In this document: piece by piece, positions 1 through 33,352 of the stretch
How the letters are laid out: every line of letters starts with the position of its first letter
Position numbering within the stretch: position 1 is the first letter of the stretch
From: Rebecca billardiae RCC1528
Taxonomy: Eukaryota > Protista > Haptophyta
Reading direction: 5' to 3'
DNA: 64,000 bases
Assembly: GCA_965240325.2 (NCBI GenBank)
Contig: OZ251254.1
Location: forward strand, 799,843-863,842
The notes under the pieces: generated by a model
What the model was told of the DNA's origin: nothing
The model's database searches: none
The model's input: only the letters and a program-made list of their open reading frames with translations
Translations under genes and position numbers: made by a program

Positions 1-1400
1 CCTCGCAGCTCCCACTGGGGACGCTCGGCCGAAAACATCTTCCGCATGGCGCGGAGCGCATGGGCCGCGCGCGCCAAATCCAACGCCGGCGCGGACATCG
101 TGAGAGGATTCCCTAAGGGGGTTTTCGCCCGATTCGCGATTGCTGCCCTCGTCGTCTCGCGTGCAGGTCGAACGGGGCCCAAATCGACCCGTTTGATGCG
201 GTACGCTCGGCGCGTCGACACGATCGTGCGACTTGGGGCGATCCTCGCCCGACGTGCACGTCGAACGCTCGCACCGGCCATAGCATCAGACGCTGCGCAC
301 GATGGCCGCCTCGCGCGATCCACCGCCGCGCGTCGAGCTCGGTGCAGAAAGGCCCTCATCACGAGGTGTCTCGCGGGCGGGAAGCGCCATCGCACGCACG
401 GGACGCAAGATTTGGCGCGGCCTTCTGAACTCGATCGCCGGAATCCGCGCACCGGACTCAGTCCTCGCTCGCGGTCCGGTCCCTCAGCCGAAGCCCACGT
501 CCGGCCTGCATGGCGTCGACGGTGACCGATGCGACGGAAGCGCAGCGCCACGGCGTACGACGCGCAGCGGACGCACCTCCCGGGTCTGTCGCCGTGGTAG
601 CAACCGCGTCATCGCGAGTTGGCGACCCTCGCCGCAGCGCGACACAGACAAGCCCGTGATGCCATCCGCAGAGAGATGAATCGTCGAGCATGCAACATCG
701 CCGCGCCATCCTCGTCCATGGCGCAGGCGCTGCGGGACGAGGCGGAAGTCGTCACGCCGGTGACGGATGCGCTGCGATTCGTGTGCCCGCGTGAGCAGCG
801 CTTGCCCACTCTCGATCGCGAGTGGCACACGCTGTCGCTGTGCGCACAGCTCCTCGTGCCGCCGAGCACACGAGCGCCAGACCTGTCGAAGATGCGAAGA
901 GCGACGACCGCGTGAACGTCAACGCGCTCGTGCTCAGCGTGGCGGCCGTGTACGACGTCAACGCGACCTGCGCCGAGCCCATCATGCCTGGAGCGGACAT
1001 CGGCAAGCATCCTCGCGACGACCGCTCTCGGCTGGCAGGAGGACATGCACATGATCTACTCTGGCGGCTTCGTCGGCGGCGAGGCGCTCGATTACGCCAT
1101 CGCGGTCGACATGCGGCACATACAGCGCGTACCCGCGCTCGCGCGGAGCAACGGGCTACCCGCCCCGCCCCGCGTGCTGCACATTCCCTCGTGGGTGTGG
1201 GGCCTCGCTGATGCGCATAAGAGTACAGACTGAGACGTGTGACACGTCGGGGAGCCAACTTCACGTGTCACTGGTCCTTGCACTCGACTGTCCGTCACCC
1301 ACGGCCACGAGCGAATGTGGAAGGACGCGAACCCGCAGAGGATACATTGCGACAGCACTGGCACGGCCCGCCGACCCCCCCGCCCGCCAGGGCACAGTTT
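1..1400 (+). mobile_element. Hairpin-ended Ulp1 element, copy 1 (diverged short subfamily; 5' end outside window)
   Basis: Homologous to the other copies; ends with ACGGCCCGCCGACCCCCCCGCCCGCCAGGGCACAGTTT at 1400; closest to 27720-29245. Confidence 0.85.
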
Positions 1401-1415
1401 ATATAGTATCATTCA

Positions 1416-3619
1416 ATGGCGGGCCGTAGGTCCGCCCCTTGTAGTGCCCGGGAAAAAGATAAGAAAAAAGAAAAAGAAAAAAGAAAATCGCCTCGCAAAG
1501 AAAAGAAAATCGCCTCCCTCACTGCCGGGTCGCTTCGCTCACTACCGGGCGCCCTCGCAGCTCCCACTGGAGACGCTCGGCCGAAAACATCAGACGCATG
1601 GCGCGGAGCGCGTGGGCGGCGCACGCCAAATCCAACGCCGGCGGGGACATCGTGAGAAGACTCCCGAGGGGGGTTTTCGCCCGATTCGCGATTGCTGCCC
1701 TCGTCGTCTCGCGTGCAGGTCGAACGGGGGCCAAAGTCGACCAGTTTGGAAGTACGCTCGGCGCGTCGACACGATCGTGCGACCTGGGGCGGTCCTCGCC
1801 CGACTTGCACGTCGAGCGCTCGCACGAGCCATAGTATTAAGCGCTGCGCACGACAACCACCTCGCGCGATCCACCGTCGCGCGTCGGGCTCGGTGCGGAA
1901 AGGCCCTCATCACGAGGCGTCTCGCGGGCGGGAAGCGCCATCGCACGCGAAGCAAGCTTTGGCGCGGCCTTCTGAACTCGATCGCCGGAAACGGCGCACC
2001 GGACTGTCGCGTGCCACAACTTCTCAAAGCCGGGCGCATGCAAATCCGTTTGCTACAGCTGTACCAGTTCCCGGCCAAGCCGAAGGGCCGGCCCTTGTCC
2101 CGGCGATCATCTTTCGCGATCGCGGCCAAAGATCGCTCTCAGCTCGGCGCTCGCGGTCCCTCACAGCCGAAAGCCCACGTCCGGCCTTCAGCATGGCGTC
2201 GACGGTGACCAATGCGACGGAGGCGCAGCGCAAAGCGGCGTACGAGGCGCAGCGAACGCAGCTGCCGTGTCTGTCGCCGTGGCAGGAACCGCGTCTTGGC
2301 GAGTCGGCGGCCCTCGTCGCACAGCGCTACAGTATGACCGATCCCAGAGGCGCATCCGCCACGAGCTGAAACGCCGAGCGTGCAACATTGTCGCCCCATC
2401 CTCCACCATGTCACGAGCGCTGCGGGACGAGGCCGACGTCGTGAAGTCAGTGGCACATGCGCTGCGCTTCCTGTGCCTGCTCGAGCAGCGCGTGCCCACC
2501 CTCGATCGCGAGTGGCACACGCTCTCGCACTGCGCGCGCGCGCACCGCCCGGACAGCTCCTGATACCGCCGAACGTGCGGGTGCCGGACCTGTCGCGCGA
2601 AGCGGCGAGCGCCGACGAGCGCTTGGACCTGGACGCGTTGTTGCGCAGCGTGGCGGCCGTGCACGACGCCGACGCGACCTTCGCCGAGCCCATCGTGCCC
2701 GGAGCGGACATCGGCATCCTCGCGACACACGATTTCAGCTGGCGGCAGGAGGAGATGCTGTCGCGTTATCCGTACAGCGCCGAGATTACGCGGGCTCTGC
2801 GATCCATGGCGAGCTTGTGACTTGGGGCGGCGACTCGCGCAGCAGTTTGGCCGCTCGATGTACGAGTTCGCGTCCGGAGGAGTACGCGCGGCATGCAGGC
2901 TGCCGCCAGTGGGTACTGGCTACGAGTCCAAGCCCGCATGACCCTCACATCTCGAGTCTGCACCCTGCCGTTCGCTGTGTCAAAGCAGCCGCAACGAACA
3001 AGCGTCGTTGAGTGTCGATTGGCTGCGCGAGCGCGGTCTCGCCCCGCCCAACCCAAGTGTGTGCGAGTGAGCATGTGTCTTGAGCATGTGGCGTGCGTTG
3101 ACGCCATCCGCGACGGCCGACATGGCCATGGAGCGCCCGCATCACTCGCCTGCACCGTGCCCTTCATAGCCTACGGGAAGCTCCGCAAATCTGTTGATTT
3201 TGCTCTTTTTTGCCCGTTGGAGTCATCTTCTTCGCTTGGTTCTTAGTGCACTGAAAACCCTATTTTAAAGAATGAATTTTAGCGCGCGCGGGCGGCAGCG
3301 GAGCGCAACCAACCCGCGGAGTCGGGAGTGTCCGAAGGAGATCTCCGAGACGCTAAATGTGAGCCAATTCTTGTCGCCTGCGCACCAACCTTGCGCCCGG
3401 GACCGACCATTAAAGTTGAGTGAGTCTCCCGTGAGTCTCCCGGCGCTGTACGGTTATTATTCGTCAGTGAGTCAGGTAGCTCACCATCATCTGTGTGTCG
3501 CATTGTTATTCGTCATCCTGCCCGTCAAACCGCTAAATAAAAGGCGCGAACCCGCTGGGGAAATATTGCGACAGCACTGGCACGGCCCGCCGACCCCCCC
3601 GCCCGCCAGGGCAGAGTTT
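1416..3619 (+). mobile_element. Hairpin-ended Ulp1 element, copy 2 (internally deleted, interrupted by a MITE)
   Basis: Starts ATGGCGGGCCGTAGGTCCGCC at 1416, ends GGGCAGAGTTT at 3619; colinear with 7256-8762 once 2770-3453 is removed. Confidence 0.9.
2770..3453. mobile_element. Non-autonomous TIR element (MITE), piggyBac-like ends, 4-bp TTAT TSD
   Basis: Perfect 13-bp TIR CCGTACAGCGCCG/CGGCGCTGTACGG; TTAT at 2766-2769 and 3454-3457; empty site GCGTTATTATTCG present in sister copies. Confidence 0.9.
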
Positions 3620-4360
3620 AATATATGGCGGGCCGTAGGTCCGCCCCTTGTAGTGCCCGGGAAAAAGATAAGAAAAATAAAAGGAAAAAAGAAAATCGCC
3701 TCGCAGAGAAAAGAAAATCGCCTCGCTCACTGCCGGGTCGCTTCGCTCACTACCGGGCGCCCTCGCAGCTCCCACTGGAGACGCTCGGCCGAAAACATCA
3801 GACGGATGGCGCGGAGCGCATGGGCCGCGCGCGCCAAATCCAACGCCGGCGCGGACATCGTGAGAGGACTCCCGAGGGGGGTTTTCGCCCGATTCGCGAT
3901 TGCTGCCCTCGTCGTCTCGCGTGCAGGTCGAACGGGGGCCAAAGTCGACGCGTTTGGAGGCACACTCGGCGCGTCGACACGATCGTGCGACCTGGGGCGG
4001 TCCTCGCCCGACTTGCACGTTGAGCGCTTGCACGGGCCATAGCATCAAGCGCTGCGCACGACAACCACCTCGCGCGATCCACCGTCGCGCGTCGGGCTCG
4101 GTGCGGAAACGCATTCATCACGAGGTGTCTCGCGGGCGGGAAGCGCCATCGCACGCGACGCAAGCTTTGGCGCGGCCTTCTGAACACCATAACCGGAATG
4201 CACACACCGGACTGTCGTCGCGTGCCCCTGTTGGCAAGGTCGGGCGCATGCAAATCCGTTTGCTACGGTCGGTGGTGTTCCAGAGCAAGCGCTCGTCTTT
4301 CGCGCTCGCGAGCTCGCGGCCAAAGATCGCTCGGCGCTCGGGGGCCCACGTCCGGCCTGC

Positions 4361-6712
4361 ATGGCGTCGACGGTGACCAATGCGACGGAGGGGCAGCGCA
4401 AAGCGGCGTACGACGCGCACCGCACCTCCCGGGTTTGCAGCCGTGGCAGGAACCGCGTCGTGGCGAGTCGGCGGCCCTCGTCGCAGCGCGCTATCACAAA
4501 TCCCAGGTGCGCATCTGCGACGAGCTGAAACGCCGAGCGTGCAAGATCGCCGCGCCATCCTGGTCCATGGCACGGGCGCTGCGGGACGAGGCCGACGTCG
4601 TGAAGCCAGTGGCACATGCGCTGCGCTTCGTGTGCCTGCTCGAGCAGCGCGTGCCCACCGTCGATCGCGAGTGGCACACGCTCTCGCACTGCGCGCGCGT
4701 ACAACGCCAACAGCTCCTGATACCGCCGAACGTGCGTGTGCCGGACCTGTCGCGCGGAGCGGCGAGCGCCGACGAGCGCTTGGACCTGGACGCGCTGTTG
4801 CGCAGCGTGGCGGCCGTGCACGACGCCGACGCGACCTTCGCCGAGCCCATCGTGCCCGGAGAGGACATTGGCATCCTCGCGACACACGATCTCAGCTGGC
4901 GCCACGAGGAAATGCTCACGATCTCCTCTGGCGGATTCGTCGGCGGCGAGGCGCTCGACTACGTCATCGCGGTCGAGATGCGGCACATGCAGCGCGTACG
5001 CGAGCTCGCGCGAAGCCACGGGCTGCCCGTCCCGCCCCGCGTGCTGCACGTTCCCTCGTGGGTGTGGACCTTGCTCATGGGCGCGGGCGTGTACGCGTGG
5101 GAGAAGGTGGCCGACATCTTTGCGCTCTTCGACCTGAACGAGTACGACGTGCTCTCCTTCATCATCAACCAGGACGGCAACCACTGGGCGCAGGGGGTCG
5201 TGGACTTGCGCCGCGAGATCATCGAGTACCGCGAGCCCCTGGGCGGAGGCGACATGATCGAGTTCGTCTCGAACGTGCAGCTGCTGCTCGCCGACGCGCA
5301 CGAGGCCCAGCAGCAGCGCACACCGCGCACATGCGCGCAGCGCGACCCCTCCACGTGGCGCGTGTTCGAGCGCGCGCGCGAGCTGCCGTTGACGATGGCG
5401 CGGCAGGTGCCGGGCACGGTGCACTGCGCGGTGCTCGTCTTCGCGTACGTCCTCGACACCGTGCGAGGCCACGCGCCGTGCGGCATGAGCCAGCCCTTCG
5501 ACCCCAAGGAGTGGCGGCGCTTGATGCTACTCACGGCGCTCACGGGCAAGTCTTTTGCCGACGTGGCAGGGACGTGCGCGCAGCCCGACGCGGTGGCGAC
5601 GTGTGTCAAAGGCGCACGCGAGTCGGCGCGCTCGCATCCGTCGCCGCATATCGCGCAACGCGCCTCCGACCCCGCGCTCGCCGCGGAGACCAACGCCGCG
5701 GACGCGACAGCGAGCCCAGCCGCCCCCATCGCCGGGCTCCCAGCCGTTGCCGACGCCATGCGCGTGGACATGGAGGAGTCGTGCGACGCGCTCGATGACG
5801 CCGTCGCGTCGAACCGCGGCACGGCGCCGCCGCGGCACTCGCTCGCAGGCGCCAGCGCACGGCTCGGCGCCATCCGCCCCGCATCCCACGCCGAGCGGCG
5901 CAGCGCCCGTGGGCGCCTTGCAGCCGGGCGCGCCGCCGCGCGCCGACGACCACGTCGCCGAGGAGCCGCTGAGCGACGACCAGGCCGACGCCACCGGCGT
6001 GACCAGCATGGCGGCGCCGCCACACTCGCGCGTGCTGCGCTCGCAGACGTCGGCGCGCGACTCGGCGCTTTCCAGACCGCACCCCACGCCGAGCGGCGCC
6101 GCCCCCTTGGCCGCCTCGCAGCCCGGCGCGCCGCCGCCCACCGACGGCCACCTGGTCGGCGACCCGATGAGCGACGACGAGGCCGACGCCACCGGCGCGA
6201 CGGGCATCCCGCCGCCGACTCCGGACTTCGACCCGTCGCAGCACGTGCAGGGGATGATCCACGCGAACACGCACTCGTGCGCAGCGATGCTCACCTTCAG
6301 CCGCGGCGAGGAGAAGCACGCCGTTGGCATGTGCACCGTGTGCCTGCAGGTGCGCAACATTGGCCACGACTCCGGCGCCGATCTGAGCGCACGCCCAGGG
6401 TTCAACACGGTCATCGCCGCGCCGTGGGACTGCCAGCCGCGCGCGCAGCGCTATCCGGGCGCGCCCAAGTCGCGCGTGATGTGCAAGATCTGCATGGCGC
6501 TGAACACCAGCGCGGCGCGGCGCCGCACGCCGGACAACAACGAGCTCAAGGCACACCCCTACTCGGGCTTCTCCAGCCCCGCCGGCGACATGTCCAGCGA
6601 CCTCCACCACAACAACATGCACTTCCTGCCCGTGTCCGAGTACCTGCTGCCGTGCACCGAGTTCGAGCTGCAGCTGCTGGGCAAGTACGCGTGCGCCGCC
6701 ACCTACGATTTT
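4361..6712 (+). pseudogene. Transposon-borne Ulp1/SENP-like (clan CE) cysteine protease fused to Cys-rich (CxC-like) domain; frameshifted and truncated
   Basis: Motifs IINQDGNHWAQGVVDL, EYREPLG, RQVPGTVHCAVLVF; then CTVC, CKIC, FLPVSEYLLPCTEFELQLL; 4-bp deletion near 4425 (vs 18078) and 11-bp deletion near 5841 shift the frame. Confidence 0.75.
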
Positions 6713-6784
6713 AATATAAAGACCGGGCCCATTACACTGATTTCAAATAATATAAAGACCGGGCCCATTACACTGATTTCAAAT
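6713..6784 (+). repeat. 36-bp tandem duplication at the truncation point of the ORF (also at ~14275-14346)
   Basis: AATATAAAGACCGGGCCCATTACACTGATTTCAAAT x2, followed by (GAGAGACA)3. Confidence 0.9.
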
Positions 6785-7255
6785 AATAATAACCGTTAGA
6801 AATCAACATAGAGAGACAGAGAGACAGAGAGACAGAAATCGGTAGGATGCACTGACTTCCAGACGACCTGAACAAATAATGAATCAGGACATCACACTCC
6901 GCCACAACTTGAACTGTTTTCGTGTTTAGCTCCAAGGACAAACCGTCACCGTCAGGCGCACACGGGCACGCCGCCGTCGCACGCCAATCAGTTGGCAGTG
7001 CGTGCGCGCAGTCGAAGGCTCGGCACGATGACGAGTAGCACAGTGGGTGCAGGAATACACGCGCAATCACACTGTCGCTGAGCTCGCACCAGAGTCATCT
7101 GTCGCGTTATTATTCGTCAGTGAGTCGGGTAGCTCACAATCATCTTGGTATGATGTCGCATTGTTATTCGTAGTCATCCTGCCCGTCAAACCGCTATAAA
7201 TAAAAGGCGCGAACCCGCTGGGGAAATATTGCGACAGCACTGGCACGGCCCGCCG

Positions 7256-8762
7256 AACTCTGCCCTGGCGGGCGGGGGGGGTCGGCGGGCCGTGCCAGTG
7301 CTGTCGCAATATTTCCCCAGCGGGTTCGCGCCTTTTATTTAGCGGTTTGACGGGCAGGATGACGAATAACAATGCGACACACAGATGATGGTGAGCTACG
7401 ACCTGACTCACTGACGAATAATAACGCGACAGCATCTCCTCCTGCCGCCAGCTGAGATCGTGTGTCGCGAGGATGCCGATGTCCGCTCCGGGCACGATGG
7501 GCTCGGCGAAGGTCGCGTCGGCGTCGTGCACGGCCGCCACGCTGCGCAACAACGCGTCCAGGTCCAAGCGCTCGTCGGCGCTCGCCGCTTCGCGCGACAG
7601 GTCCGGCACCCACACGTTCGGCGGTATCAGGAGCTGTCGGCGGTGCGCGCGCGCGCAGTGCGAGAGCGTGTGCCACTCGCGATCGAGGGTGGGCACGCGC
7701 TGCTCGAGCAGGCACAGGAAGCGCAGGGCATGTGCCACTGGCTTCACGACGTCGGCCTCGTCCCGCAGCGCTCGTGACATGGTGGAGGATGGGGCGACAA
7801 TGTTGCACGCTCGGCGTTTCAGCTCGTGGCGGATGCGCCTCTGGGATCGGTCATACTGTAGCGCTGTGCGACGAGGGCCGCCGACTCGCCAAGACGCGGT
7901 TCCTGCCACGGCGACAGACACGGCAGCTGCGTTCGCTGCGCCTCGTACGCCGCTTTGCGCTGCGCCTCCGTCGCATTGGTCACCGTCGACGCCATGCTTA
8001 GAAGGCCGGACGTGGGCTTTCGGCTGTGAGGGACCGCGAGCGCCGAGCGATCTTTGGCCGCGATCGCGAAAGATGATCGCCGGGACAAGGGCCGGCCCTT
8101 CCCGTTCGGCTTGGCCGGGAACTGGTACAGCTGTAGCAAACGGATTTGCATGCGCCCGGCTTTGAGAAGTTGTGGCACGCGACAGTCCGGTGCGCCGTTT
8201 CCGGCGATCGAGTTCAGAAGGCAGCGCCAAAGCTTGCGTCGCGTGCGATGGCGCTTCCCGCCCGCGAGACGCCTCGTGATGAGGGCCTTTCCGCACCGAG
8301 CCCGACGCGCGACGGTGGATCGCGCGAGGTGGTTGTCGTGCGCAGCGCTTAATACTATGGCTCGTGCGAGCGCTCGACGTGCAAGTCGGGCGAGGACCGC
8401 CCCAGGTCGCACGATCGTGTCGACGCGCCGAGCGTACTTCCAAACTGGTCGACTTTGGCCCCCGTTCGACCTGCACGCGAGACGACGAGGGCAGCAATCG
8501 CGAATCGGGCGAAAACCCCCCTCGGGAGTCCTCTCACGATGTCCCCGCCGGCGTTGGATTTGGCGCGCGCCGCCCACGCGCTCCGCGCCATGCGTCTGAT
8601 GTTTTCGGCCGAGCGTCTCCAGTGGGAGCTGCGAGGGCGCCCGGTAGTGAGCGAAGCGACCCGGCAGTGAGGGAGGCGATTTTCTTTTCTTTGCGAGGCG
8701 ATTTTCTTTTTTCCTTTTCTTTTTTCTTATCTTTTTCCCGGGCACTACAAGGGGCGGACCTA
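7256..8762 (-). mobile_element. Hairpin-ended Ulp1 element, copy 4
   Basis: Reverse complement of copy 2 without the MITE; 5' end cut in the hairpin loop (GGCGGACCT/A). Confidence 0.9.
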
Positions 8763-9860
8763 ACTCTGCCCTGGCGGGCGGGGGGGTCGGCGGGCCGTGC
8801 CAGTGCTGTCGCAATATTTCCCCAGCGGGTTCGCGCCTTTTATTTAGCGGTTTGACGGGCAGGATGACGAATAACAATGCGACAGGGCTGGAGGCTTCGG
8901 CCGCCAGCCTGATCACCCGGAGCCCGTTATAAAGGGGAATTTAAAAAACACAGATGATGGTGAGCTACCTGACTCACTGACGAATAATAACGCGACAGCA
9001 TCTCCTCCTGCCGCCAGCTGAAATCGTGTGTCGCGAGGATGCCGATGTCCGCTCCGGGCACGATGGGCTCGGCGAAGGTCGCGTCGGCGTCGTGCACGGC
9101 CGCCACGCTGCGCACCAACGCGTCCAGGTCCAAGCGCTCGTCGGCGCTCGCCGCTTCGCGCGACAGGTCCGGCACCCGCACGTTCGGCGGTATCAGGAGC
9201 TGTCGGCGGTGCGCGCGCGCGCAGTGCGAGAGCGTGTGCCACTCGCGATCGAGGGTGGGCACGCGCTGCTCGAGCAGGCACAGGAAGCGCAGCGCATGTG
9301 CCACTGGCTTCACGACGTCGGCCTCGTCCCGCAGCGCTCGTGACATGGTGGAGGATGGGGCGACAATGTTGCACGCTCGGCGTTTCAGCTCGTGGCGGAT
9401 GCGCCTCTGGGATCGGTCATACTGTAGCGCTGTGCGACGAGGGCCGCCGACTCGCCAAGACGCGGTTCCTGCCACGGCGACAGACACGGCAGCTGCGTTC
9501 GCTGCGCCTCGTACGCCGCTTTGCGCTGCGCCTCCGTCGCATTGGTCACCGTCGACGCCATGCTGAAGGCCGGACGTGGGCTTTCGGCTGTGAGGGACCG
9601 CGAGCGCCGAGCTGAGAGCGATCTTTGGCCGCGATCGCGAAAGATGATCGCCGGGACAAGGGCCGGCCCTTCGGCTTGGCCGGGAACTGGTACAGCTGTA
9701 GCAAACGGATTTGCATGCGCCCGGCTTTGAGAAGTTGTGGCACGCGACAGTCCGGTGCGCCGTTTCCGGCGATCGAGTTCAGAAGGCCGCGCCAAAGCTT
9801 GCTTCGCGTGCGATGGCGCTTCCCGCCCGCGAGACGCCTCGTGATGAGGGCCTTTCCGCA
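8762..9860 (-). mobile_element. Hairpin-ended Ulp1 element, copy 5 (5'-truncated)
   Basis: 3' terminus AACTCTGCCCTGGCGGG at 8762; homology ends at 9860 before filler AATATATTAT. Confidence 0.85.
8885..8948 (+). mobile_element. 64-bp insertion with stem-loop and A-tail
   Basis: Absent from sister copies (GACA|CACAGATG at ~11761); GGCTGGAGGC-TTCG-GCCGCCAGCC hairpin; ends TTTAAAAAA. Confidence 0.75.
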
Positions 9861-9870
9861 AATATATTAT

Positions 9871-11640
9871 AAACTCAGCCCTGGCGGGCGGGGGGGTCGG
9901 CGGGCCGTGCCAGTGCTGTCGCAATATTTCCCCAGCGGGTTCGCGCCTTTATTTATAGCGGTTTGACGGGCAGGATGACTACGAATAATAACAATGCGAC
10001 ATCATACCGAGATGATTGTGAGCTACCCGACTCACTGACGAATAATAACGCGACAGATGACTCTGGTGCGAGCTCAGCGACAGTGTGATTGCGCGTGTAT
10101 TCCTGCACCCACTGTGATGCTACTCGTCATCGTGCCGAGCCGCAAAGATGTCGGCCACCTTCTCCCACGCGTACACGCCCGCGCCCATGAGCAAGGTCCA
10201 CACCCACGAGGGAACGTGCAGCACGCGGGGCGGGGCGAACAGCCCGTTGCTCCGCGCGAGTTCGCGTACGCGCTGCATGTGCCGCATCTCGACGGCGATG
10301 ACGTAGTCGAGCGCCTCGCCGCCGACGAATCCGCCAGAGGAGATCGTGAGCATGTCCTCCTGCCGCCAGCTGAGATCGTGTGTTGCGAGAATGCCAATGT
10401 CCGCTCCGGGCACGATGGGCTCGGCGAAGGTCGCGTCGGCGTCGTGCACGGCCGCCACGCTGCGCAACAGCGCGTCCAGGTCCACGCGCTCGTCGGCGCT
10501 CGCCGTTCCGCGCGACAGGTCCGGCACTCGCACGTTCGGCGGTATTCAGGAGCTGTTGGCGGTGTACGCGCGCGCAGTGCGAGAGCGTGTGCCACTCGCG
10601 ATCAACGGTGGGCACGCGCTGCTCGAGCAGGCACACGAAGCGCAGCGCATGCGTCACCGGCTTCACGACGTTGGCCTCCTCCCGCAGCGCCCGTGCCATG
10701 GTGGAGGATGGCGCGGCGATCTTGCACGCTCGGCGACTCATTTCTCTGCGAACGAGCGCTTTGGCTCGGTCATAGCGCGCTGTCGCCTGCGTCGCCGACT
10801 CGCGAAGACGCGGTTCTTTCCACGGCTGCAACCCCGGGAGGTGCGTGCGGTGCGCGTCGTACGCCGCTTTGCGCTGCGCCTCCGTCGCATTGGCCACCGT
10901 CGACGCCATGCAGGCCGGGCGTGGGTCCTCGAGCGCCGAGCGATCTTTGGCCGCGAGCTCGCGAGCGCGAAAGATGATCGCTGGTCAGGAGTCCTGTGCG
11001 GTAGCAAACGGATTTGCATGCGCCCGACCTTGCCAACCGGGGCACGCGACAGTCCGGTGTGTGGATTCCGGTTATGGTGTTCAGAAGGCCGCGCCAAATC
11101 TTGCGTCGCGTGCGATGGCGCTTCCCGCCCGCGAGACGCCTCGTGATGAGGGCCGTTCCGCACCGAGCCCGACGCGCGACGGTGAATCGAGCGAGGCGGC
11201 CATCGTGCGCAGCGCTTGATGCTATGGCCGGTGCGAGCTTTCGACGTGCACGTCAGGCGAGGATCGCCCCAGGTCGCACGATCGTGTCGACGCGCCGAGC
11301 GTACCGCTCCAAACGCGTCGATTTAGCCCCCGTTCGACCTGCACGCGAGACGACGAGGGCAGCAATCGCGAATCGGGCGAAAACACCCCTCGGGAGTCTT
11401 CTCACGATGTCCGCTCCGGCGTTGGATTCGGCGCGCGCGGCCCACGCGCTCCGCGCCATCCAGGACTCTCTTTCGGCCGAGCGTCCCCAGTGGGAGCTGC
11501 GAGGGCGCCCGGTAGTGAGCGAAGCAACCCGGCAGTGAGCGAGGCGATTTTCTTTTCTTTGCGAGGCGATTTTCTTTTTTCCTTTTCTTTTTCTTATCCT
11601 TTTCCCGGGCACTACAAGGGGCGGACCTACGGCCCGCCAT
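9871..11640 (-). mobile_element. Hairpin-ended Ulp1 element, copy 6 (both termini intact, different internal deletion)
   Basis: AAACTCAGCCCTGG at 9871 to CCTACGGCCCGCCAT at 11640; deletion junction at ~10141. Confidence 0.9.
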
Positions 11641-12139
11641 AAACTCTGCCCTGGCGGGCGGGGGGGTCGGCGGGCCGTGCCAGTGCTGTCGCAATATTTC
11701 CCCAGCGGGTTCGCGCCTTTTATTTAGCGGTTTGACGGGCAGGATGACGAATAACAATGCGACACACAGATGATGGTGAGCTACCTGACTCACTGACGAA
11801 TAATAACGCGACAGCATCTCCTCCTGCCGCCAGCTGAAATCGTGTGTCGCGAGGATGCCGATGTCCGCTCCGGGCACGATGGGCTCGGCGAAGGTCGCGT
11901 CAGCGTCGTGCACGGCCGCCACGCTGCGCAACAACGCGTCCAGGTCCAAGCGCTCGTCGGCGCTCGCCGCTTCGCGCGACAGGTCCGGCACCCGCACGTT
12001 CGGCGGTATCAGGAGCTGTCGGCGGTGCGCGCGCGCGCAGTGCGAGAGCGTGTGCCACTCGCGATCGAGGGTGGGCACGCGCTGCTCGAGCAGGCACAGG
12101 AAGCGCAGCGCATGTGCCACTGGCTTCACGACGTCGGCC
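11641..12139 (-). mobile_element. Hairpin-ended Ulp1 element, copy 7 (5'-truncated)
   Basis: Abuts copy 6 with no spacer (GGCCCGCCAT|AAACTCTGCC). Confidence 0.85.
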
Positions 12140-12514
12140 AAAACTCAGCCCTGGCGGGCGGGGGGGTCGGCGGGCCGTGCCAGTGCTGTCGCAATATTTC
12201 CCCAGCGGGTTCGCGCCTTTTATTTATAGCGGTTTGACGGGCAGGATGACTACGAATAACAATGCGACATCATACCAAGATGATTGTGAGCTACCCGACT
12301 CACTGACGAATAATAACGCGACAGATGACTCTGGTGCGAGCTCAGCGACAGTGTGATTGCGCGTGTATTCCTGCACCCACTGTGCTACTCGTCATCGTGC
12401 CGAGCCTTCGACTGCGCGCACGCACTGCCAACTGATTGGCGTGCGACGGCGGCGTGCCCGTGTGCGCCTGACGGTGACGGTTTGTCCTTGGAGCTAAACA
12501 CGAAAACAGTTCAA

Positions 12515-14274: not shown

Positions 14275-14652
14275 AATATAAAGACCGGGCCCATTACACT
14301 GATTTCAAATAATATAAAGACCGGGCCCATTACACTGATTTCAAATAATAATAACCGTTAGAAATCAACATAGAGAGACAGAGAGACAGAGAGACAGAAA
14401 TCGGTAGGATGCACGCACTGACTTCCAGACGACCTGAACAAATGAATCAGGACATCACACTCCGCCACAACTTGAACTGTTTTCGTGTTTAGCTCCAAGG
14501 ACAAACCGTCACCGTCAGGCGCACACGGGCACGCCGCCGTCGCACGCCAATCAGTTGGCAGTGCGTGCGCGCAGTCGAAGGCTCGGCACGATGACGAGTA
14601 GCACAGTGGGTGCAGGAATACACGCGCAATCACACTGTCGCTGAGCTCGCAC

Positions 14653-17060
14653 CAGACTGAGTCTAGGGGGTCCATGACAGCAGCCCACTGAATTGTGATT
14701 TTCGACAACCATGCGATTTAGGTGTCTGACGAGCGTGGCGCTTGCGGAGGCACCCACAAATATGTCCTGGAACCCAGCCCAGCCGTCAGAAGCACCCAAA
14801 ACCGACTCCGCGCGTCGTCGCGCGGTCGTGCGCGCACGCCAGCTGCGCCACTGTGTCACATACAGATTCAGCCAAACGTCAACGACTTGTTATGGCGGCT
14901 AAATGACGGTATGTCGTCGGACTTACTTATTCATAACCGTTGCAACCCGCCCCAACAAAATTAAGGTGGACTTGCTAAATTTTAGTAGGCACGATGAGTG
15001 CGCGTAGAGGTCGGTGAAAAACTACTCCAAGATCGAGCATGTTACCCACTTAATTAGAGACATGTACCCGTATATATGCACTTACCCACCCGTTCATTAT
15101 ACAATGCGGGTGCTGGGTTTTAAATATATATTCAGGGTGGTGTCAATATGGGGGTACCTTGTTCACTATTCGTGCTGGGTCATCCGAATAGGCCGCGTCG
15201 CCGCGCGGAGTGACGGCGGGCTCATGCCACCGTCAAACCAGCAGGCCCGGACGAACCTGATGTGGGCGGCGGGCTGCGTGCCGAAGCACACTACCAAGCG
15301 CACCTCTGAGCATGCCACCATCCCCATAGTCGTGAAGGAGTCCTCCGCCATCGACGCTTGCGTGCGCAGACTAGCAGTCATCGCCGCCGCCGAGCTTGCC
15401 GCGGCCGTTCGGCGACTTCCGTGCCCGTGCTCTGTGTCACCGGCGTCGTCGCCGTTCGTCGTACCCCAGCCCACGCGAGGCCGTCACCGGTCCACCGGTC
15501 CTGCGGCGGACTGCGCGCGCTTCGCCGCGCGCTCGCCCTCGAGCTCCGCCGCTCTCCTCTCGCGCTCGAACTGGACGCAGTCGGCAGCCATGGCAGCCCG
15601 CTCGGCCGCAGCGCGATCTGTGCCCCCCCGCGCGCTGCGCTCGGTTGCGTCGGCGCGCAAGCTGGCGCGCGCAGCGTCAGCGACGGCGCGCGCGGTCGCC
15701 TTGCGCGACGAGTCCAGCTCCACCTGCTGCTCCGTCAGGCGCACCTGCTGCTCCAAGATGACCGCGTGCTCAGCAGGAGTCACGCGCTGCTCGTGCAGCG
15801 GCACCTGCACGCGGCCTGCTGCGGACGCGCGCGGCGCGCCGGCGTCGGGGGGCGAGTAGAGGTCGCGGAAGGGGCAGCTGTCGTCGCCGGCGCCCAGCGA
15901 CGTGTCGTTGGCATCCAGCTCCGCCTTCCTCTCCGCCGCCGACGCGCCCTGCTTCCGGCTCAGGATGCGCTCCATGTCCTTGTTCTTGCCCTTCCACCAC
16001 CTGTGCACGGTCATCAGCCAGATGCCGATCACCTCCAGCAGCGGCGAGTCGTGGCGCGCCGAGATGCCGAGCGCATCCGCGCAGACGAGCGCGAGCGCAT
16101 TGGGCTTCTTCGTCCCACCGTCGCGCGCGGTCTGGGCGCACGCCGGGGTGAACACTCTGACCAACGGCTTGTGCTTCTTCAAGTTCTCGAGCATGAGGTC
16201 CATGAGCGTACGGAGGAGGTCGAGGAGCATGAAGTTGAGCACCGATGCGTACCGCGGGCGAAAGCCGGCCACGGGCCGACCGGCCAAGGGCTGCAGCACG
16301 TGGATGGCGCGCGCCGCCACCGCCGTCTCCTCGAGCTGCTGCGCGCTGACGTTGACGTCAGGCCGTAGCTCGGGCCTGCACGGTTGCACACAGCCGAGGC
16401 CGTCCGCGGAGGAGGCGAGCCCCTCGGCGGTGCCAGCGGGGACCTCGGGCGGGCTGCACACATCCATGGGCACGCGTGCATCATCATCTGCCGCGCCCTG
16501 GACCTCGTCATGCCCGGCACAGCGGTCCGCAAGTTGGTCGGCGGTAGCTGGCCCTTGCGGCAGAGGCGTCGCGGGCACGTCCGAGGGCGAGAAGGCAGCG
16601 TCGGGTGGGGAAGGAGACAGCGTCGAGTCGTTGCCGATGCCTATCCCACCGCGTTGCGCATGTTCGTCTCCGCGTTGCTCGCCTGTACGTGCTCCTAGGA
16701 CGCGCTCCTTGGTCGCGGGCAGCACACGTTGAGCACGCAGATTCAAATCATGAAGCACGAGCGTCGACCGGCCAGCGACTCCCACCGAGAGCCCGGTCCA
16801 CACGAAGCATGGCTACCTGTCCGCAGCCGCCCAGCCGCTCGGCGAGGCGCCTGCGCCGAGGTGGGCGCGCCCAACGGCGAGCGGACGGCCGTCGACGAGG
16901 GCCATCAGCCTCGCCGACCCGTTCAGAGCTCCGCTCCCGCGCCGGGGCCAGCCGAGCGCGGATTTGGAATCTGCCGATCGCGAAAACACGCCGAACAAGT
17001 TCTGAACAGGAAAAGAAAAGAAATCAAAAATCAATTTAATCTGATGGACCCCCTACAGTG
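14653..17060. mobile_element. CACTG-ended TIR element (CACTA/CMC-like), probable 2-bp AC TSD
   Basis: Interrupts host sequence GCACCAGAGTC; right end ATGGACCCCCTACAGTG; left end shares TAGGGGGTCCAT but has small insertions. Confidence 0.7.
15484..16803 (-). CDS. Cargo ORF of the CACTG element, unknown function (helical core plus C-terminal coiled coil); start uncertain
   Basis: 439-aa ORF with protein-like core (LNFMLLDLLRTLMDLMLENLKKHK...HRWWKGKNKDMERIL) and Ala/Glu/Arg-rich tail. Confidence 0.5.
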   Translation of the reverse strand: MWTGLSVGVAGRSTLVLHDLNLRAQRVLPATKERVLGARTGEQRGDEHAQRGGIGIGNDSTLSPSPPDAAFSPSDVPATPLPQGPATADQLADRCAGHDEVQGAADDDARVPMDVCSPPEVPAGTAEGLASSADGLGCVQPCRPELRPDVNVSAQQLEETAVAARAIHVLQPLAGRPVAGFRPRYASVLNFMLLDLLRTLMDLMLENLKKHKPLVRVFTPACAQTARDGGTKKPNALALVCADALGISARHDSPLLEVIGIWLMTVHRWWKGKNKDMERILSRKQGASAAERKAELDANDTSLGAGDDSCPFRDLYSPPDAGAPRASAAGRVQVPLHEQRVTPAEHAVILEQQVRLTEQQVELDSSRKATARAVADAARASLRADATERSARGGTDRAAAERAAMAADCVQFERERRAAELEGERAAKRAQSAAGPVDR

Positions 17061-17288
17061 ACCAGAGTCATCTGTCGCGTTATTATTCGTCAGTGAGTCG
17101 GGTAGCTCACAATCATCTTGGTATGATGTCGCATTGTTATTCGTAGTCATCCTGCCCGTCAAACCGCTATAAATAAAAGGCGCGACCCCGCTGGGGAAAT
17201 ATTGCGACACTGACAGCACTGGCACGGCCCGCCGACCCCCCCGCCCGCCAGGGCTGAGTTTATATAATATCCGCTCAGTGCTCAGTGA

Positions 17289-19395
17289 ATGGCGGGCCGT
17301 AGGTCCGCCCCTTGTAGTGCCCGGGAAAAAGATAAGAAAAAGAAAAAGAAAAAAGAAAATCGCCTCGCAGAGAAAAGAAAATCGCCTCGCTCACTGCCGG
17401 GTCGCTTCGCTCACTACCGGGCGCCCTCGCAGCTCCCACTGGAGACGCTCGGCCGAAAACATCAGACGGATGGCGCGGAGCGCATGGGCCGCGCGCGCCA
17501 AATCCAACGCCGGCGCGGACATCGTGAGAGGACTCCCGAGGGGGGTTTTCGCCCGATTCGCGATTGCTGCCGCCTCGTCGTCTCGCGTGCAGGTCGAACG
17601 GGGGCCAAAGTCGACGCGTTTGGAGGCACGCTCGGCGCGTCGACACGATCGTGCGACCTGGGGCGGTCCTCGCCCGACTTGCACGTTGAGCGCTTGCACG
17701 GGCCATAGCATCAAGCGCTGCGCACGACAACCACCTCGCGCGATCCACCGTCGCGCGTCGGGCTCGGTGCGGAAACGCATTCATCACGAGGTGTCTCGCG
17801 GGCGGGAAGCGCCATCGCACGCGACGCAAGCTTTGGCGCGGCCTTCTGAACACCATAACCGGAATGCACACACCGGACTGTCGTCGCGTGCCCCTGTTGG
17901 CAAGGTCGGGCGCATGCAAATCCGTTTGCTACGGTCGGTGGTGTTCCAGAGCAAGCGCTCATCTTTCGCGCTCGCGAGCTCGCGGCCAAAGATCGCTCGG
18001 CGCTCGGGGGCCCACGTCCGGCCTGCATGGCGTCGACGGTGACCGATGCGACGGAGGGGCAGCGCAAAGCGGCGTACGACGCGCACCGCACGCACCTCCC
18101 AGGTTTGCAGCCGTGGCAGGAACCGCGTCGTGGCGAGTTGGCGGCCCTCGTCGCAGCGCGCTATCACAAATCCCAGGTGCGCATCTGCGACGAGCTGAAA
18201 CGCTGTCCACGCGCATGGCGTCGGCAACGGCTGGGAGCCCGGCGATGGGGGCGGCTGGGCTCGCTGTCGCGTCCGCGGCGTTGGTCTCCGCGGCGAGCGC
18301 GGGGTCGGAGGCGCGTTGCGCGATATGCGGCGACGGATGCGAGCGCGCCGACTCGCGTGCGCCTTCGACACACGTCGCCATCGCGTCGGGCTGCGCGCAC
18401 GTCCCTGCCACGTCGGCAAAAGACTTGCCCGTGAGCGCCGTGAGTAGCATCAAGCGCCGCCACTCCTTGGGGTCGAAGGGCTGGCTCATGCCGCACGGCG
18501 CGTGGCCTCGCACGGTGTCGAGGACGTACGCGAAGACGAGCACCGCGCAGTGCACCGTGCCCGGCACCTGCCGCGCCATCGTCAACGGCAGCTCGCGCGC
18601 GCGCTCGAACACGCGCCACGTGGAGGGGTCGCGCTGCGCGCATGTGCGCGGTGTGCGCTGCTGCTGGGCCTCGTGCGCGTCGGCGAGCAGCAGCTGCACG
18701 TTCGAGACGAACTCGATCATGTCGCCTCCGCCCAGGGGCTCGCGGTACTCGATGATCTCGCGGCGCAAGTCCACGACCCCCTGCGCCCAGTGGTTGCCGT
18801 CCTGGTTGATGATGAAGGAGAGCACGTCGTACTCGTTCAGGTCGAAGAGCGCAAAGATGTCGGCCACCTTCTCCCACGCGTACACGCCCGCGCCCATGAG
18901 CAAGGTCCACACCCACGAGGGAACGTGCAGCACGCGGGGCGGGACGGGCAGCCAGTGGCTTCGCGCGAGCTCGCGTACGCGCTGCATGTGCCGCATCTCG
19001 ACCGCGATGACGTAGTCGAGCTTGAACTGTTTTCGTGTTTAGCTCCAAGGACAAACCGTCACCGTCAGGCGCACACGGGCACGCCGCCGTCGCACGCCAA
19101 TCAGTTGGCAGTGCGTGCGCGCAGTCGAAGGCTCGGCACGATGACGACTAGCACAGTGGGTGCAGGAATACACGCGCAATCACACTGTCGCTGAGCTCGC
19201 ACCAGAGTCATCTGTTGCGTTATTATTCGTCAGTGAGTCGGGTAGCTCACAATCATCTTGGTATGATGTCGCATTGTTATTCGTAGTCATCCTGCCCGTC
19301 AAACCGCTATAAATAAAAGGCGCGAACCCGCTGGGGAAATATTGCGACAGCACTGGCACGGCCCGCCGACCCCCCCGCCCGCCAGGGCTGAGTTT
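17289..19395 (+). mobile_element. Hairpin-ended Ulp1 element, copy 9, with inverted interior (18204-19020)
   Basis: 5' terminus 17289, 3' terminus ~19395; protease segment on minus strand; same inversion junction as 12515. Confidence 0.85.
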
Positions 19396-19590
19396 TCTAA
19401 ATTCTTAAAGGCTATATCAGTATCACTCAGACCGGGGACCGGTGATGTCACTCAGATGCTGCTGTGTAATCCGTTACTCCGCCGCCGCACTCACGGTACA
19501 GTAAATCCGTACAGTTTCAGACTAAGCAGAATAAGAGATTCCGGCACACAGCTCAGGCAGGCGAGATTGTGCTCAGCATCATGACAATCA

Positions 19591-24105: not shown

Positions 24106-25659
24106 ATGTCGACCGTCACCGACGGCTCGAAGTCGGCGAGCCGATACGAGTCGGGTCCACAACGAGGCGATGCCCACCAAGCATCGGGCGCCTCGCGCCG
24201 CCGATGGACCTCGCACGAGGACAACGCGCTGCGCTCGGCGGTGGCGCTCTACGGGCCTCGGCAGGCACGCGCCCCGCGCGCACACCAACCACCGGCGCGC
24301 GGCGGTCACCATCGACCGTTGGTCCTGCCGTTAGCGCCCGCGGCTCTCATGCCCGCGATCCGCCCTCCCGCGTCATCCTCGCGCGCGCAGTGGGCGCTGA
24401 TCGCCGAGCAGATGCCCAACCGCTCGCGCTCGGACTGGCAGTGCCGCGAGCGGTGGCACAACCACCTGCAGCCGTCGGTCTCCAAGGAGAAGTGGTCGAC
24501 GGAGGAGGACGACGTGATTCTCAACGCCGTGCGCCAGATGGGGCAGGTGCGCCGCGCGCCGCCGCCGCCGCCGCCACGCCGTCGCCGCCGCCGCCGTGCA
24601 GCCGCCGCGCCGCCGCCGCTCATCCGCGTGCGCCCCACCCCCCCGCCCCTGCCTTGCACCGCGGCGGCGGGTGCAGCGATGGAGCCAGATCCGCGCGCTT
24701 CTTCCCGCGCGCTCGACGCACGCGCTCAAAAACCGCTACCACGCGCTCTGCCGCCAGCAGCGCGCGGGCCGCCTCAAGCCAGCGGGCGTGAGCAGCGCGC
24801 CTGGCGCCGCGTCGGATGAGCCGACGACCGGCGCTGAGGACTCGGCGGCGGACGAGCAGAGCAACGCCGACCGGTCCGTCACCGACGACGCGTCGGGCTC
24901 GGGCGCGCGCGCTGCGCAGCCCGCGCAGTGCGGCGCCCCCGGTGCGAACGGCGACGCGGCGGGTGCTCGCACCAACTGGGCGCGCAGCGGCGGCGCGGCG
25001 GCGAGCACGCTCTCGCGCGAGCGCGCCAAGCCGCGCGCCGCGGTGAGCCTCGCGCCCCCGCCCGAGGAGCAGATCGAGCGCCCTGTCGCCGCGTTCGCCG
25101 GCAAGACGCGCGGTGCCGACTACGACGGCAGCACGCGCGTGTCCGCCGCGCCGCAGCCGCACGACGCGGCCACTTTCGCCGCCGCCCTCGCCGAGGTGAG
25201 CGGCGCCGCGTCCGGCACGCCCAACCACCAGGCGTTCCTCGACGCGGTGATGAGCGCGCGCGGCGGGTATGAGGCGCTCGGGCTCGGGGCGCGCTGGCCC
25301 GAAGGTGCGCCTCCCGCCGAGCTCGGCGGCGGCGGCGGCGGCGACGACGACGGCGGCGGCGGCGAGGTCGATCCGAGCGTGGCGCTGCGCCGCGAGAAGA
25401 TCTGCCAGCTCACCGTGCAGCTGCTCGCGTGCTCGCGCGTGCCGCCCGAGCTGCCGCAGCGCAACGCGCTCGTGGACTCGGTGCTCGAGCAGCTGCGTGC
25501 GCTGTTCCTCGGAGAGCCTGGCGCGGGCGGGGGCGGCACGACTGGCAGCTCACCCGACTGCGCGGCGGCGGTGGCTGCGGCGGCGGCGATGCATGCGCAG
25601 CAGCAGGCGCAGGCGCGGACACAGCAGCAGACGCAGACGTCGATGCTGCAGCACGCGGC

Positions 25660-25755
<96 letters not shown>

Positions 25756-26313: not shown

Positions 26314-26317
<4 letters not shown>

Positions 26318-26385
<68 letters not shown>

Positions 26386-26404
26386 GTGACTCGATATATA
26401 TATC

Positions 26405-26470
<66 letters not shown>
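26318..26470. repeat. Adjacent (CT)n and (AT)n microsatellites
   Basis: Direct inspection. Confidence 0.95.
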
Positions 26471-26472
<2 letters not shown>

Positions 26473-27253
26473 ATCTTTAAATTAGCGCAATGACAATACT
26501 ACGCCGTACTAGTCGTCTCACTACCGCTACGACGTACGATCCGACCGCCTGACGAGTGAACGAAGAGTGTTAGACGACTATAGTCTCGGAGACTAGTCGT
26601 CTGCCAACACTCTTATCGTTCGGACATTGACGGTCTGACCGCGACGTAGTACTCGTAGTAGCGCTTATTAGTCCGAATCACTCCGGGCTACATCATTGTT
26701 AGTGTTACATAGCAGCGACATATGAGTTGTAAATGGCCGCGGCCGCGCGGGATTCCATCCGCGTCGCCGATCAGCTGCTCGGAGGCCCTGACGGGCAGCA
26801 ACCGTCGGTAAGTCGGGAGTGGCGCCGAGTGACTGAGTAGTGAGTGCCAGAACAGCAGACCGACGAAGAACACCGTTCCGATCCGAGCGCAGCCACCGAG
26901 CGCAGCCACTACCGTCGCGAGGGGACCGTTTCATTTCGTCTTTATTATTTTCCGCCCGCCAATAATATCCGCCATCATCAAATAATATTGAATATTATAA
27001 CTCATCCGCCCCGAAATTAATGACAGCATGCGCGCAGCGACCGAGCCGTCCACGCCGGCGGAGGAGGATGGGCCCTCCTCCGCCGGCGGGAGCGACGCCA
27101 AGCCGGCCAAGCAGGCTCGCACCGCGTCCCTCGGCGACCCCCCCCGTGACCTGGCTGCCGCCGTGCCGCCCGGTCGCTGGCGTAGAGCCGCGCGCGGCGC
27201 TGGCGCGCCAGACGCGCCCGGTTGGGCAGCGCAGGCACCCTCCAGCGCAGCCA

Positions 27254-27358
27254 GGACGACGACTTCCTCAACGGCAAGGGCGACGACTTCCTCTGCGGCC
27301 AGGGCGACGACTTCCTCAACGGCAAGGACGACGACTTCCTCAACGGCAAGGGCGACCA
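27254..27358 (+). repeat. 24-bp minisatellite, about 4.3 units
   Basis: GG(A/G)CGACGACTTCCTCAACGGCAA repeated. Confidence 0.9.
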
Positions 27359-27719
27359 CGTTCCCTCAACTTGGGAAGGCCACTAGGCCGCGCACACCGG
27401 CCCGGGCGACCACATCCACTACCTGCGCACTACGGCATCAACTTGAACAGCCTCGGACGACGACGACGCGGGCAACTACTAGTTAGTGAACTACATGATG
27501 ACCAAGGCCGCGACTCGACGACTGCAAAACAGCTGCATCCCCGGGCGCCCGTACTACCTCAGTGACCGTGTGATCAGCATCGGTTACGACGACTCCCTCA
27601 CCCGCGGCCAACGCGCTCCGACATCCTCATCCATTAACTCCATTCAGTACTTCGACAGACGAATCAGGAGAGCTGCGCCCTCGTGCCTGTGTCTTTAATA
27701 AAGGCATAGAATTAGTCCG

Positions 27720-29245
27720 AAAACTGTGCGCCCTGGCGGGCGGGGTGGTCGGCGGGCCGTGCCAGTGCTGTCGCAATGTTTCCTCTGCTGCGGGTTTGCG
27801 CGTCTTTCCACATTCGCTCGTGGCCGTGGGTGACGGACAGTCCGAGGGCGAGAACCAACGGTGACACCTGAAGTTCTCCCTGCGGCGTGTACACGTCTGT
27901 GCGCATCAGCAAGGCCCACACCCACGAGGGAATGCGCAGCACGCGGGGCGGGGCGGGTAGCCCGTTGCTCCGCGCGAGCGCGGGTACGCGCTGTATGTGC
28001 CACATCTCGACCGTGATGGCGAAATCGAGCGCCTCGCCGTCGACGAAGCCGCCAGAGTAGATCGTGTGCATGTGCTTCTGCCGCCAGCCGAGAGCAGTCG
28101 TCGCGAGGATGCCGATGTCCGCTCCGGGCATGATGGGCTCGGTGAAGGTCGCGTTGACGTCGTACATGGCCGCCACGCTGAGCACGAGCGCGTTGACGTT
28201 CACGCGGTCGTCGCTCTTCGCCTCTTCGACAGGTCTGGCGCCCGCGTGTTTGGCGGCACGAGGAGCTGTTGGTTGTGCGCGCGCGCGCGCACAGCGACAG
28301 CGTGTGCCACTCGCGATCAAGAGTGGGCACGAGCTGCTCATGTGGGCACACGAATCGCAGCGCATCCGTCACCGGCGTGACGACTTCCGCCTCGTTCCGC
28401 AGCGCCTGCGCCATGGACGAGGATGGCGCGTCGATGTTGCATGCTCGACGTTTCATCTCTCTGCGGATGGCATAACGGGGTTGTCTGTGTCGCACTGCGG
28501 CGAGGGTCGCCAGCTCGCGAAGACGCGGTTGCTGCAACGGCGACAGACCCGGGAGGCGCGTCTGCTGCGCGTCGTACGCCGTTGGCGCTGCGCTTCCGTC
28601 GCATTGGTCACCGTCGACGCCATGCACGCCGGACGCGGGCTTCACTCGGGCTGACCGGCGGAGGGACCGCGAGCGACAGTCCGGTGCGCGGATTCTGCCA
28701 ATCCGATCGAGTTCAGAAGCGGCGCCAAATCTTGCGTCGCGTGCGATGGCGCTTCCCGCCCGCGAGACACCTCGTGATGAGGGCCTTTCCGCACCGAGCT
28801 CGACGCGCGGCGGTGGATCGCGCGAGGTGGTTGTCGCGCGCAGCGCTTGTTACTATGACCCGTGCGAGCGCTCGACGTGCAAGTCGGGGGAGGATCGCCC
28901 CAGGTCGCACGATCGTGTCGACGCGCCGGGCGTACCTCCAAACGGCGTCGACTTTGGCCCCCGTTCGACCTGCACGCGAGACGACGTGGGCAGCAATCGT
29001 GAATCGGGCGAAAATCCCCTGGGAGTCCTCTCACGATGTCCGTGCCGGCGTTGGATTCGGCGCGCGCCGCCCACGCGCTCCGCGCCAGCCTGAACCGATT
29101 TTCGGCCCAGCGTCCCCAGTGGGAGAGCGCTGCGAGGGCGCCCGCCCGGCGGGCGGGCGCCCGGTAGTGAGCGAAGCGATATTCTTTGCGAGGCGTTTTT
29201 CTTTTTTCTTTTCTTTTTCTTATCTTTTTCCCTACGGCCCGCCAT
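27720..29245 (-). mobile_element. Hairpin-ended Ulp1 element, isolated copy 10 (diverged subfamily)
   Basis: AAAACTGTGCGCCCTGGCGGG at 27720 to CCTACGGCCCGCCAT at 29245; no TSD seen. Confidence 0.85.
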
Positions 29246-33343: not shown

Positions 33344-33352
33344 GCCCCTGCC

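Follow-up and report, generated by a model that had tools for sequence, protein, structure and literature searches.

What kind of mobile element, if any, built the dense repeat array on the left side of a 64,000-nt stretch of the genome of Rebecca billardiae RCC1528 (Haptophyta; GCA_965240325.2, contig OZ251254.1, 799,843-863,842, forward strand)? Within this stretch, hereafter the window, whose own coordinates are used throughout, we studied positions 1-19396, which hold about ten full, truncated or rearranged copies of one repeat family, and positions 27721-29245, which hold one more, isolated copy on the minus strand. An initial annotation had proposed a transposon of an undescribed kind, combining rolling-circle-style ends with coding content in the style of Kyakuja-Dileera-Zisupton (KDZ) elements. 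Our analysis leads us, with good confidence, to a different assignment, i.e. a non-autonomous family of Helitron2-type (HLE2) rolling-circle transposons. All structural features of Helitron2 elements that can be assessed here are present, whereas the target site is only consistent with T-T. This is clearly a new family of a known kind of element and not a new class.

Termini of the repeat family

The two ends of the family carry the assignment. In ten of ten copies the 3' end consists of ACGGCCCGCC, a spacer of 10-11 nt and GCCC-GCCA-GGGC (CCCGCCAGGGC), followed by (A/T)GAGTT(T) or CAGTTT, after which the similarity between the copies stops. A scan of the window allowing up to 3 mismatches returned nine occurrences of the motif ACGGCCCGCC-spacer-CCCGCCAGGGC vs 0 expected by chance, and the tenth 3' end, at 7262-7292 on the minus strand, is the motif with one extra C. 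The final 70 nt are on average 96% identical across copies vs 80-92% for the bodies of the subfamilies. The 5' end ATGGCGGGCCGT is intact in five copies, four of which have the complete hairpin, the remaining copies being 5'-truncated or rearranged; the ten copies with a common hairpin 5' end counted initially thus shrink to five, and the number ten applies to the 3' ends. The full 5' motif ATGGCGGGCCGTAGGTCCGCC occurs four times (1416+, 3625+, 17289+ and 11640-) vs 0 expected. The isolated copy has only the first 15 nt of this end, ATGGCGGGCCGTAGG, the next 21 bp with the second hairpin arm being absent.

Both ends share an asymmetric inverted repeat of 10 bp, in which, as had been noticed before, the 3' arm ACGGCCCGCC is the reverse complement of the 5' arm GGCGGGCCGT. 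The 5' arm begins at base 3, i.e. 2 bp from the tip, in all five intact 5' ends, and the 3' arm is located 28 bp from the terminus (initially given as about 30 bp), directly upstream of the small hairpin, in all ten 3' ends. The 5' hairpin, GGCGGGCC-GTA-GGTCCGCC, takes in the 5' repeat and folds at -7.6 kcal/mol in four copies; the 3' hairpin GCCC-GCCA-GGGC has a 4-bp stem in 10/10 copies. The isolated copy, the one in which host sequence can be read directly on both sides, has no target-site duplication (TSD), as claimed originally: its flanks are ...GGCTGT and TCGGAC..., giving the arrangement ...T / element ...GTTT / T... (a slash marks a joint here and below).

This layout fits the published descriptions of Helitron2/Helentron ends, to which the initial annotation had already likened it. 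Bao and Jurka (PMC3627910) define Helitron2 by asymmetric terminal inverted repeats of 8-15 bp, the 5' one lying 0-2 bp from the end and pairing with sequence downstream into a 5' hairpin, the 3' one located some 20-30 bp inside the end and followed directly by a hairpin, with insertion after a T-run and no TSD. For HLE2, the HELIANO study (Li et al. 2024, PMC11417382) gives T-T insertion and inverted repeats some 12-16 nt long, the right one being followed by a stem-loop.

Hairpins and orientation-specific, TSD-free insertion are general to Rep-mobilised transposons, and putative Replitrons have been reported in haptophytes (PMC10288648), which lends some support to the idea that these ends are served by another HUH-type enzyme, be it a helicase-less Rep like that of Replitrons or a HUH transposase not described so far. 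We consider this improbable: the mark of Replitrons is a pair of short direct repeats, one at or close to each terminus (PMC10288648), whereas no direct terminal repeat was found at the termini of the Rebecca family, whose common repeat is inverted and arranged in the asymmetric layout published as the hallmark of Helitron2 (PMC3627910).

Truncation and deletion derivatives

To map the copies of the window (Table 1) we used three references, termed L (3625-7255), M (1416-3619) and S (the isolated copy 27721-29245). Intact 3' ends (n=10) outnumber intact 5' ends (n=5), and the 5' truncations fall at four distinct points, M positions 12, 479 and 1016 as well as L position 1329. Four units of 1.5, 1.8, 2.1 and 2.2 kb have both ends intact, sharing these ends and differing in their interiors. 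The S and M types stop in the middle of the open reading frame (ORF) for a Ulp1-like protein described below, and the shorter copies (S, M and copy 6) are deletion derivatives of the L type. Frequent 5' truncation and internal deletion together with an overabundance of intact 3' ends were likewise described for the Helitron2 families of Chlamydomonas (PMC3627910).

Copy 2 contains a stretch of 675 bp (2770-3444), between M positions 1354 and 2030, that matches nothing else in the window and is richer in A+T over its last 260 bp. Either it was inserted into copy 2, or it is ancestral interior that the other copies have lost.

Table 1. Copies of the repeat family and their coding features in the window
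Feature	Positions	Strand	Description
Copy 1, S type	1-1400	+	5' part beyond window edge; 3' end intact at 1400, motif 1363-1393; 88% identity to isolated copy over 1.4 kb
Filler, 15 bp, 80% A+T	1401-1415		separates 3' end of copy 1 from 5' end of copy 2
Copy 2, M type, 2.2 kb	1416-3619	+	both ends intact; 5' motif 1416, 3' motif 3582-3612; mapping reference
Copy 3, L type, 3.6 kb, longest	3625-7255	+	5' end intact; Ulp1-like ORF; 3' end cut just past the 3' inverted repeat, tail to tail with copy 4
Copy 4, M type, 1.5 kb	7256-8761	-	5' end lacks first 12 nt (join in 5'-hairpin loop); 98% identity to copy 2
Copy 5	8762-9860	-	5' truncation at M position 479; 3' end intact; 99.5% identity to copy 2
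Filler, 10 bp, A+T	9861-9870		at junction of truncated end of copy 5
Copy 6, 1.8 kb	9871-11640	-	both ends intact; 5' motif 11620-11640, 3' motif 9878-9908; L type minus L positions 1504-3392
Copy 7	11641-12139	-	5' truncation at M position 1016; 3' end abuts 5' end of copy 6, zero bases between
3'-terminal 375 bp of L type	12141-12515	-	fused at 12515 to inverted L body (chimeric junction); 100% identity to reverse complement of 6908-7256
L-type copy, L position 1329 to 3' end	12515-17261	+	second Ulp1 ORF 12540-14276; split by unrelated 2.4-kb element 14657-17061; 99.6% identity to 4953-7093
Copy 9, 2.1 kb, right edge of array	17289-19395	+	both ends intact; L 1-909, inverted L 1329-2146, L 3284 to end
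Isolated copy, S type, 1.5 kb	27721-29245	-	both ends, no TSD; second arm of 5' hairpin deleted
Credible coding part of ORF 4198-6714	4330-5610	+	N-terminal region of no known kind plus Ulp1/C48-like domain; Pfam match about 5131-5361
'Cys cluster', +1 frame	6200-6705	+	frame translation; 8 Cys including two CxxC; follows two 198-bp repeats, runs into A+T-rich 36-bp tandem repeat

Dispersal and copies outside the array

The isolated copy is separated from the array by 8 kb, lies in inverted orientation between other genes, past an ORF with a Myb domain (24106-24819), and has the same two ends to the base. Its flank shows no similarity to that of the array. Ordinary host genes occupy the right part of the window, among them a WD40/EF-hand gene and one with a CNNM domain that starts near 29367.

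A lookup of public sequencing runs listed one run (X1), and none for the isolated copy together with its flanks. In X1, low-depth pieces are identical to the unique flanks, and many diverged pieces, 80-99% identical, cover 27656-29311. Just past the 5' terminus of the isolated copy the summed contig depth drops from 332 to less than 1; the tool itself cautions against taking this depth as a copy number. The diverged pieces and this drop support a multi-copy family as well as the position of its 5' boundary.

Scanning public metagenomes with an exact 21-mer of the 3' end gave no match. A gapped pattern of repeat plus hairpin returned 67 loci, all of them lacking a 5' end as well as CACTGGC upstream and GAGTTT downstream; we rejected these as relatives, as chance matches in G+C-rich, apparently bacterial contigs.

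Two further features surround the isolated copy. Its 5' end is located about 120 bp upstream of the likely ATG of the CNNM-domain gene (PF01595, E = 3e-23; gap 29246-29370), placing the copy within the promoter or 5' untranslated region of this gene. On the side of its 3' end, contigs of X1 also pile up at 26920-27700, where a 24-bp tandem repeat in 4.8 copies is found at 27253-27370, and a second, unrelated repeat family may abut the insertion.

Array junctions

Within the array, copies 4 to 7 follow each other head to tail on the minus strand. Neighbouring copies fall into different subfamilies, 80-92% identical, and must therefore be separate insertions rather than parts of one concatemer. 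Where a 3' end meets an intact 5' end the gap is 0 bp (11641/11640), 5, 15 or 27 bp, mostly of A+T filler, and the zero-gap joint reads GAGTTT/ATGGCGGG. At 8762/8761 a 3' end meets a 5' end lacking its first 12 nt, i.e. the join lies within the GTA loop (GT/A) of the 5' hairpin, and at 7256/7255 a 3' end meets the reverse complement of the 3' repeat of another copy, CGGCGGGCCGT, which resembles the true 5' end TGGCGGGCCGT. Other 3' ends are joined to internal positions of copies, M 479 (after the 10-bp A+T filler) and M 1016. Host sequence is met by the 3' ends at 19396 and 27720 and is A+T-rich on the 3' side.

The array has also been reshaped after insertion. Some of its segments are 99.6-100% identical, and a chimeric inverted junction is found at two places that are inverted relative to each other (12140-13332 and 18204-19396, 99.7% identity), so that local duplication and inversion must have contributed as well. 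The same two facts speak for the view that no mobile family exists at all and that the locus is a locally amplified and rearranged, satellite-like segmental duplication whose apparent ends are duplication breakpoints. This we hold to be very improbable in light of the isolated copy, found 8 kb away past the Myb-domain ORF in inverted orientation with ends matching to the base, of the 96% identity kept over the last 70 nt by subfamilies that are otherwise 80-92% identical, and of the many diverged copies in X1 with a depth ending at the 5' terminus.

The unusual joins, in the hairpin loop and with a reversed 3' repeat, could be either aberrant transposase products or later rearrangements. A more far-reaching view, which we put forward tentatively and with more doubt than conviction, takes the junctions of the array as a natural record of how the Helitron2 transposase handles its ends, joining a 3' end to the exact 5' end, to the hairpin loop (GT/A), to a reversed 3' repeat used as a surrogate 5' end, or to internal sites. 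If the junctions were such products, 5' cleavage would be directed by the 10-nt repeat as such, whichever of the two contexts it stands in, the element would prefer its own T-run as target, and RepHel proteins of haptophytes would ancestrally have had the Ulp1 module as a front domain.

Coding content

Zisupton-type transposases carry a Ulp1 domain, and the KDZ-style coding content proposed for this family had been read from a Ulp1 protease and a cluster of cysteines. The protease part of this claim is borne out, albeit weakly. The ORF 4198-6714 of copy 3 (838 aa) and its twin 12540-14276 match the Pfam profile PF02902 (Peptidase_C48) at 23.3 and 24.0 bits, the cut-off being 20.7 bits, and the domain aligns with SENP1 chains at E = 0.001 including the catalytic His of the HW motif and the catalytic Cys. 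Glu occupies the position of the catalytic Asp of SENP1, and as regards the oxyanion Gln, a Gln seven residues ahead of the Cys is unaligned. In a feature search of the ESM Atlas, 35 of 40 hits of the Ulp1 ORF are Ulp1 clusters. The Ulp1-like domain is real but weak. Past about residue 470 the ORF reads as out-of-frame text rich in Arg, Ala and Pro. Between copies, substitutions show no preference for any of the three codon positions (p = 0.06 to 0.9), and thus the Ulp1 ORF shows no sign of selection and the copies decay neutrally. Single-sequence AlphaFold models of the Ulp1 and Cys regions, with a predicted local distance difference test score (pLDDT) of 42 and 33, are too poor to use.

The cysteine stretch proposed as cargo exists, with eight cysteines in 6200-6705, and could not be linked to KDZ or to any other family. 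It gave no match to Pfam at E up to 10, including the CxC families and DUF6570, none to the sequences of the PDB at E up to 10, no homologue in a word-indexed search and no usable feature hit in the ESM Atlas.

A perfect A+T-rich tandem repeat of 36 bp in 2.1 copies, with GACCGGGCCC, is found at 6712-6788 and 14274-14350, exactly where the frame of the Cys region ends, and may be the trace of an old breakpoint left by a deletion or an insertion within the L element.

Domain tests were applied to 37 ORFs of the window. No KDZ, CxC1-6, RepHel, reverse transcriptase or other transposase domain was detected in these (KDZ and CxC1-6 at E up to 10), which agrees with the initial statement that the catalytic transposase is not in the window and leaves KDZ-style coding content and an undescribed kind of element without support. 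Nor is Ulp1 diagnostic of KDZ, because Peptidase_C48 is listed among the domains recurring in Helitron-like elements, where OTU, UCH and Peptidase_C48 are found upstream or downstream of RepHel (PMC11417382). A new, KDZ-related kind of transposon, in which the Ulp1 domain and the Cys-containing stretch following it in the +1 frame would be the protein of a cut-and-paste element, as the Ulp1 domain of Zisupton-type transposases might suggest, with hairpin ends by coincidence, is hardly credible given that neither KDZ nor CxC profiles match any of the tested ORFs, a TSD is absent, the inverted repeat lies 2 bp vs 28 bp from the tips and hence is not terminal on both sides, and intact 3' ends exceed intact 5' ends two to one, which is not a cut-and-paste trait.

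Within a Helitron2-type family, the Ulp1 ORF is most likely either a relic of the front part of the protein of the autonomous element or an old cargo, which now decays neutrally.

Evidence against the assignment and a model for array growth

Several observations weigh against the Helitron2 assignment. Neither hairpin folds better than shuffled sequence (z -1.0 and -0.25), so of the terminal hairpins annotated initially the sequences stand while their stability is not distinctive, and half of the 5' hairpin is missing from the isolated copy. An empty site was recovered for no copy, the contigs of X1 giving no read that spans one, and the exact boundaries and the T/T target therefore rest on the alignment of copies. 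Parts of the array, as the 99.6-100% identical segments, are segmental duplication and not transposition. Among the ORFs tested in the window there is no RepHel gene with these termini. The 838-aa ORF has no relatives in a phmmer search of 1.84 billion representative proteins at E up to 0.001, and the Ulp1 region has no homologues in a word-indexed search. Since neither the Ulp1 ORF nor the Cys region has detectable relatives in these searches, their tie to a RepHel protein is one that we infer.

We propose a model in which a RepHel protein, a two-Tyr HUH Rep fused to a Pif1-type helicase, would be supplied in trans and mobilise the family by a rolling-circle mechanism. As cis signals it would use the 70 nt conserved at the 3' end together with the 5' repeat and its hairpin, and it would peel off one strand in 5' to 3' direction and place it in T-rich sites, leaving the target unduplicated. 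Both the host genome and the window have a G+C content of about 70%, and TTTT or AAAA occurs about once per kb in the window's genic part. Each copy would bring its own GTTT end and sit in A+T-rich sequence, which is rare in such a genome, and for this reason later insertions would pile up beside earlier ones. A head-to-tail stack would build up in this way and then be scrambled by local inverted and direct duplications.

The family adds a well-delimited Helitron2-type element, with a deletion series and ten readable junctions, for a poorly annotated algal lineage. It reveals no new transposition mechanism, and its value lies in a compact natural set of end-joining products for testing models of HLE2 end recognition and self-targeting. 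It also carries a warning for annotation, as the Ulp1-like ORFs found here should be read as transposon relics and not as host SUMO proteases.

Other elements in the window

The L-type copy at 12515-17261 is interrupted by a 2.4-kb element (14657-17061), for which two uninterrupted copies provide empty sites (7088-7093 and 19201-19206), showing a TSD of 5-6 bp, (A)CCAGA. Close to its ends lies an inverted repeat, TAGGGGGTCCAT, perfect over 12 bp, and its ORF of 439 aa (15484-16803, minus strand) gave no Pfam match at E up to 10. Probably this element is a cut-and-paste transposon. A 400-bp inverted repeat with 97% identity (33352-33753 vs 34466-34071) is found in the stretch 33182-34466, and just upstream of it positions 33182-33226 are 84% identical to the end of the 2.4-kb element. 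The stretch may be a terminal inverted repeat (TIR) element related to the 2.4-kb element, in or near the region of the CNNM gene.

Comparison with known systems

With KDZ/Zisupton elements the Rebecca family has the Ulp1-like domain in common and nothing else: the tested ORFs encode no detected KDZ transposase or CxC domains, and the copies have neither a TSD nor symmetric TIRs.

The similarity to HLE2 as described by HELIANO (PMC11417382) comprises the inverted repeats, the stem-loop after the right repeat and the presence of Peptidase_C48 among the carried domains. Unlike these elements, the Rebecca copies are without RepHel and hence have no place in the HLE2 protein tree, and the HLE2 marker domain DUF6570 was not detected by Pfam in the Rebecca Cys region.

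The elements Helitron-1N1_CRe and CRe-1/2/3 of Chlamydomonas reinhardtii (PMC3627910) resemble the family in asymmetric repeats, hairpin layout, 5' truncations and intact 3' ends and probably in insertion at a T-run. In both hosts non-autonomous copies carry an ORF that is not a transposase, i.e. Fanzor in Helitron2 of C. reinhardtii (PMC3627910) and the Ulp1-like protein in the Rebecca family. They differ in their terminal sequences, in the haptophyte host and in the cargo, which in Rebecca is the remnant of a Ulp1-like protease. Variable-length TSDs are described for CRe-1/2/3 (PMC3627910), in contrast to none at the one isolated Rebecca copy that can be read.

FoHeli1/2 of Fusarium oxysporum (Chellapan et al. 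2016, PMC5148889) are known for self-insertion, tandem copies, composite elements with several termini and joined ends, and thereby come close to the organisation of the Rebecca array, sharing with it hairpins at both ends, an asymmetric repeat (12 bp in FoHeli), a 3' end in a T-run and tandem or composite copies. In contrast to FoHeli1/2, which are autonomous and 5-6 kb long (PMC5148889), the Rebecca stack packs ten 3' ends into 19 kb, a higher density, and includes tail-to-tail and hairpin-loop junctions.

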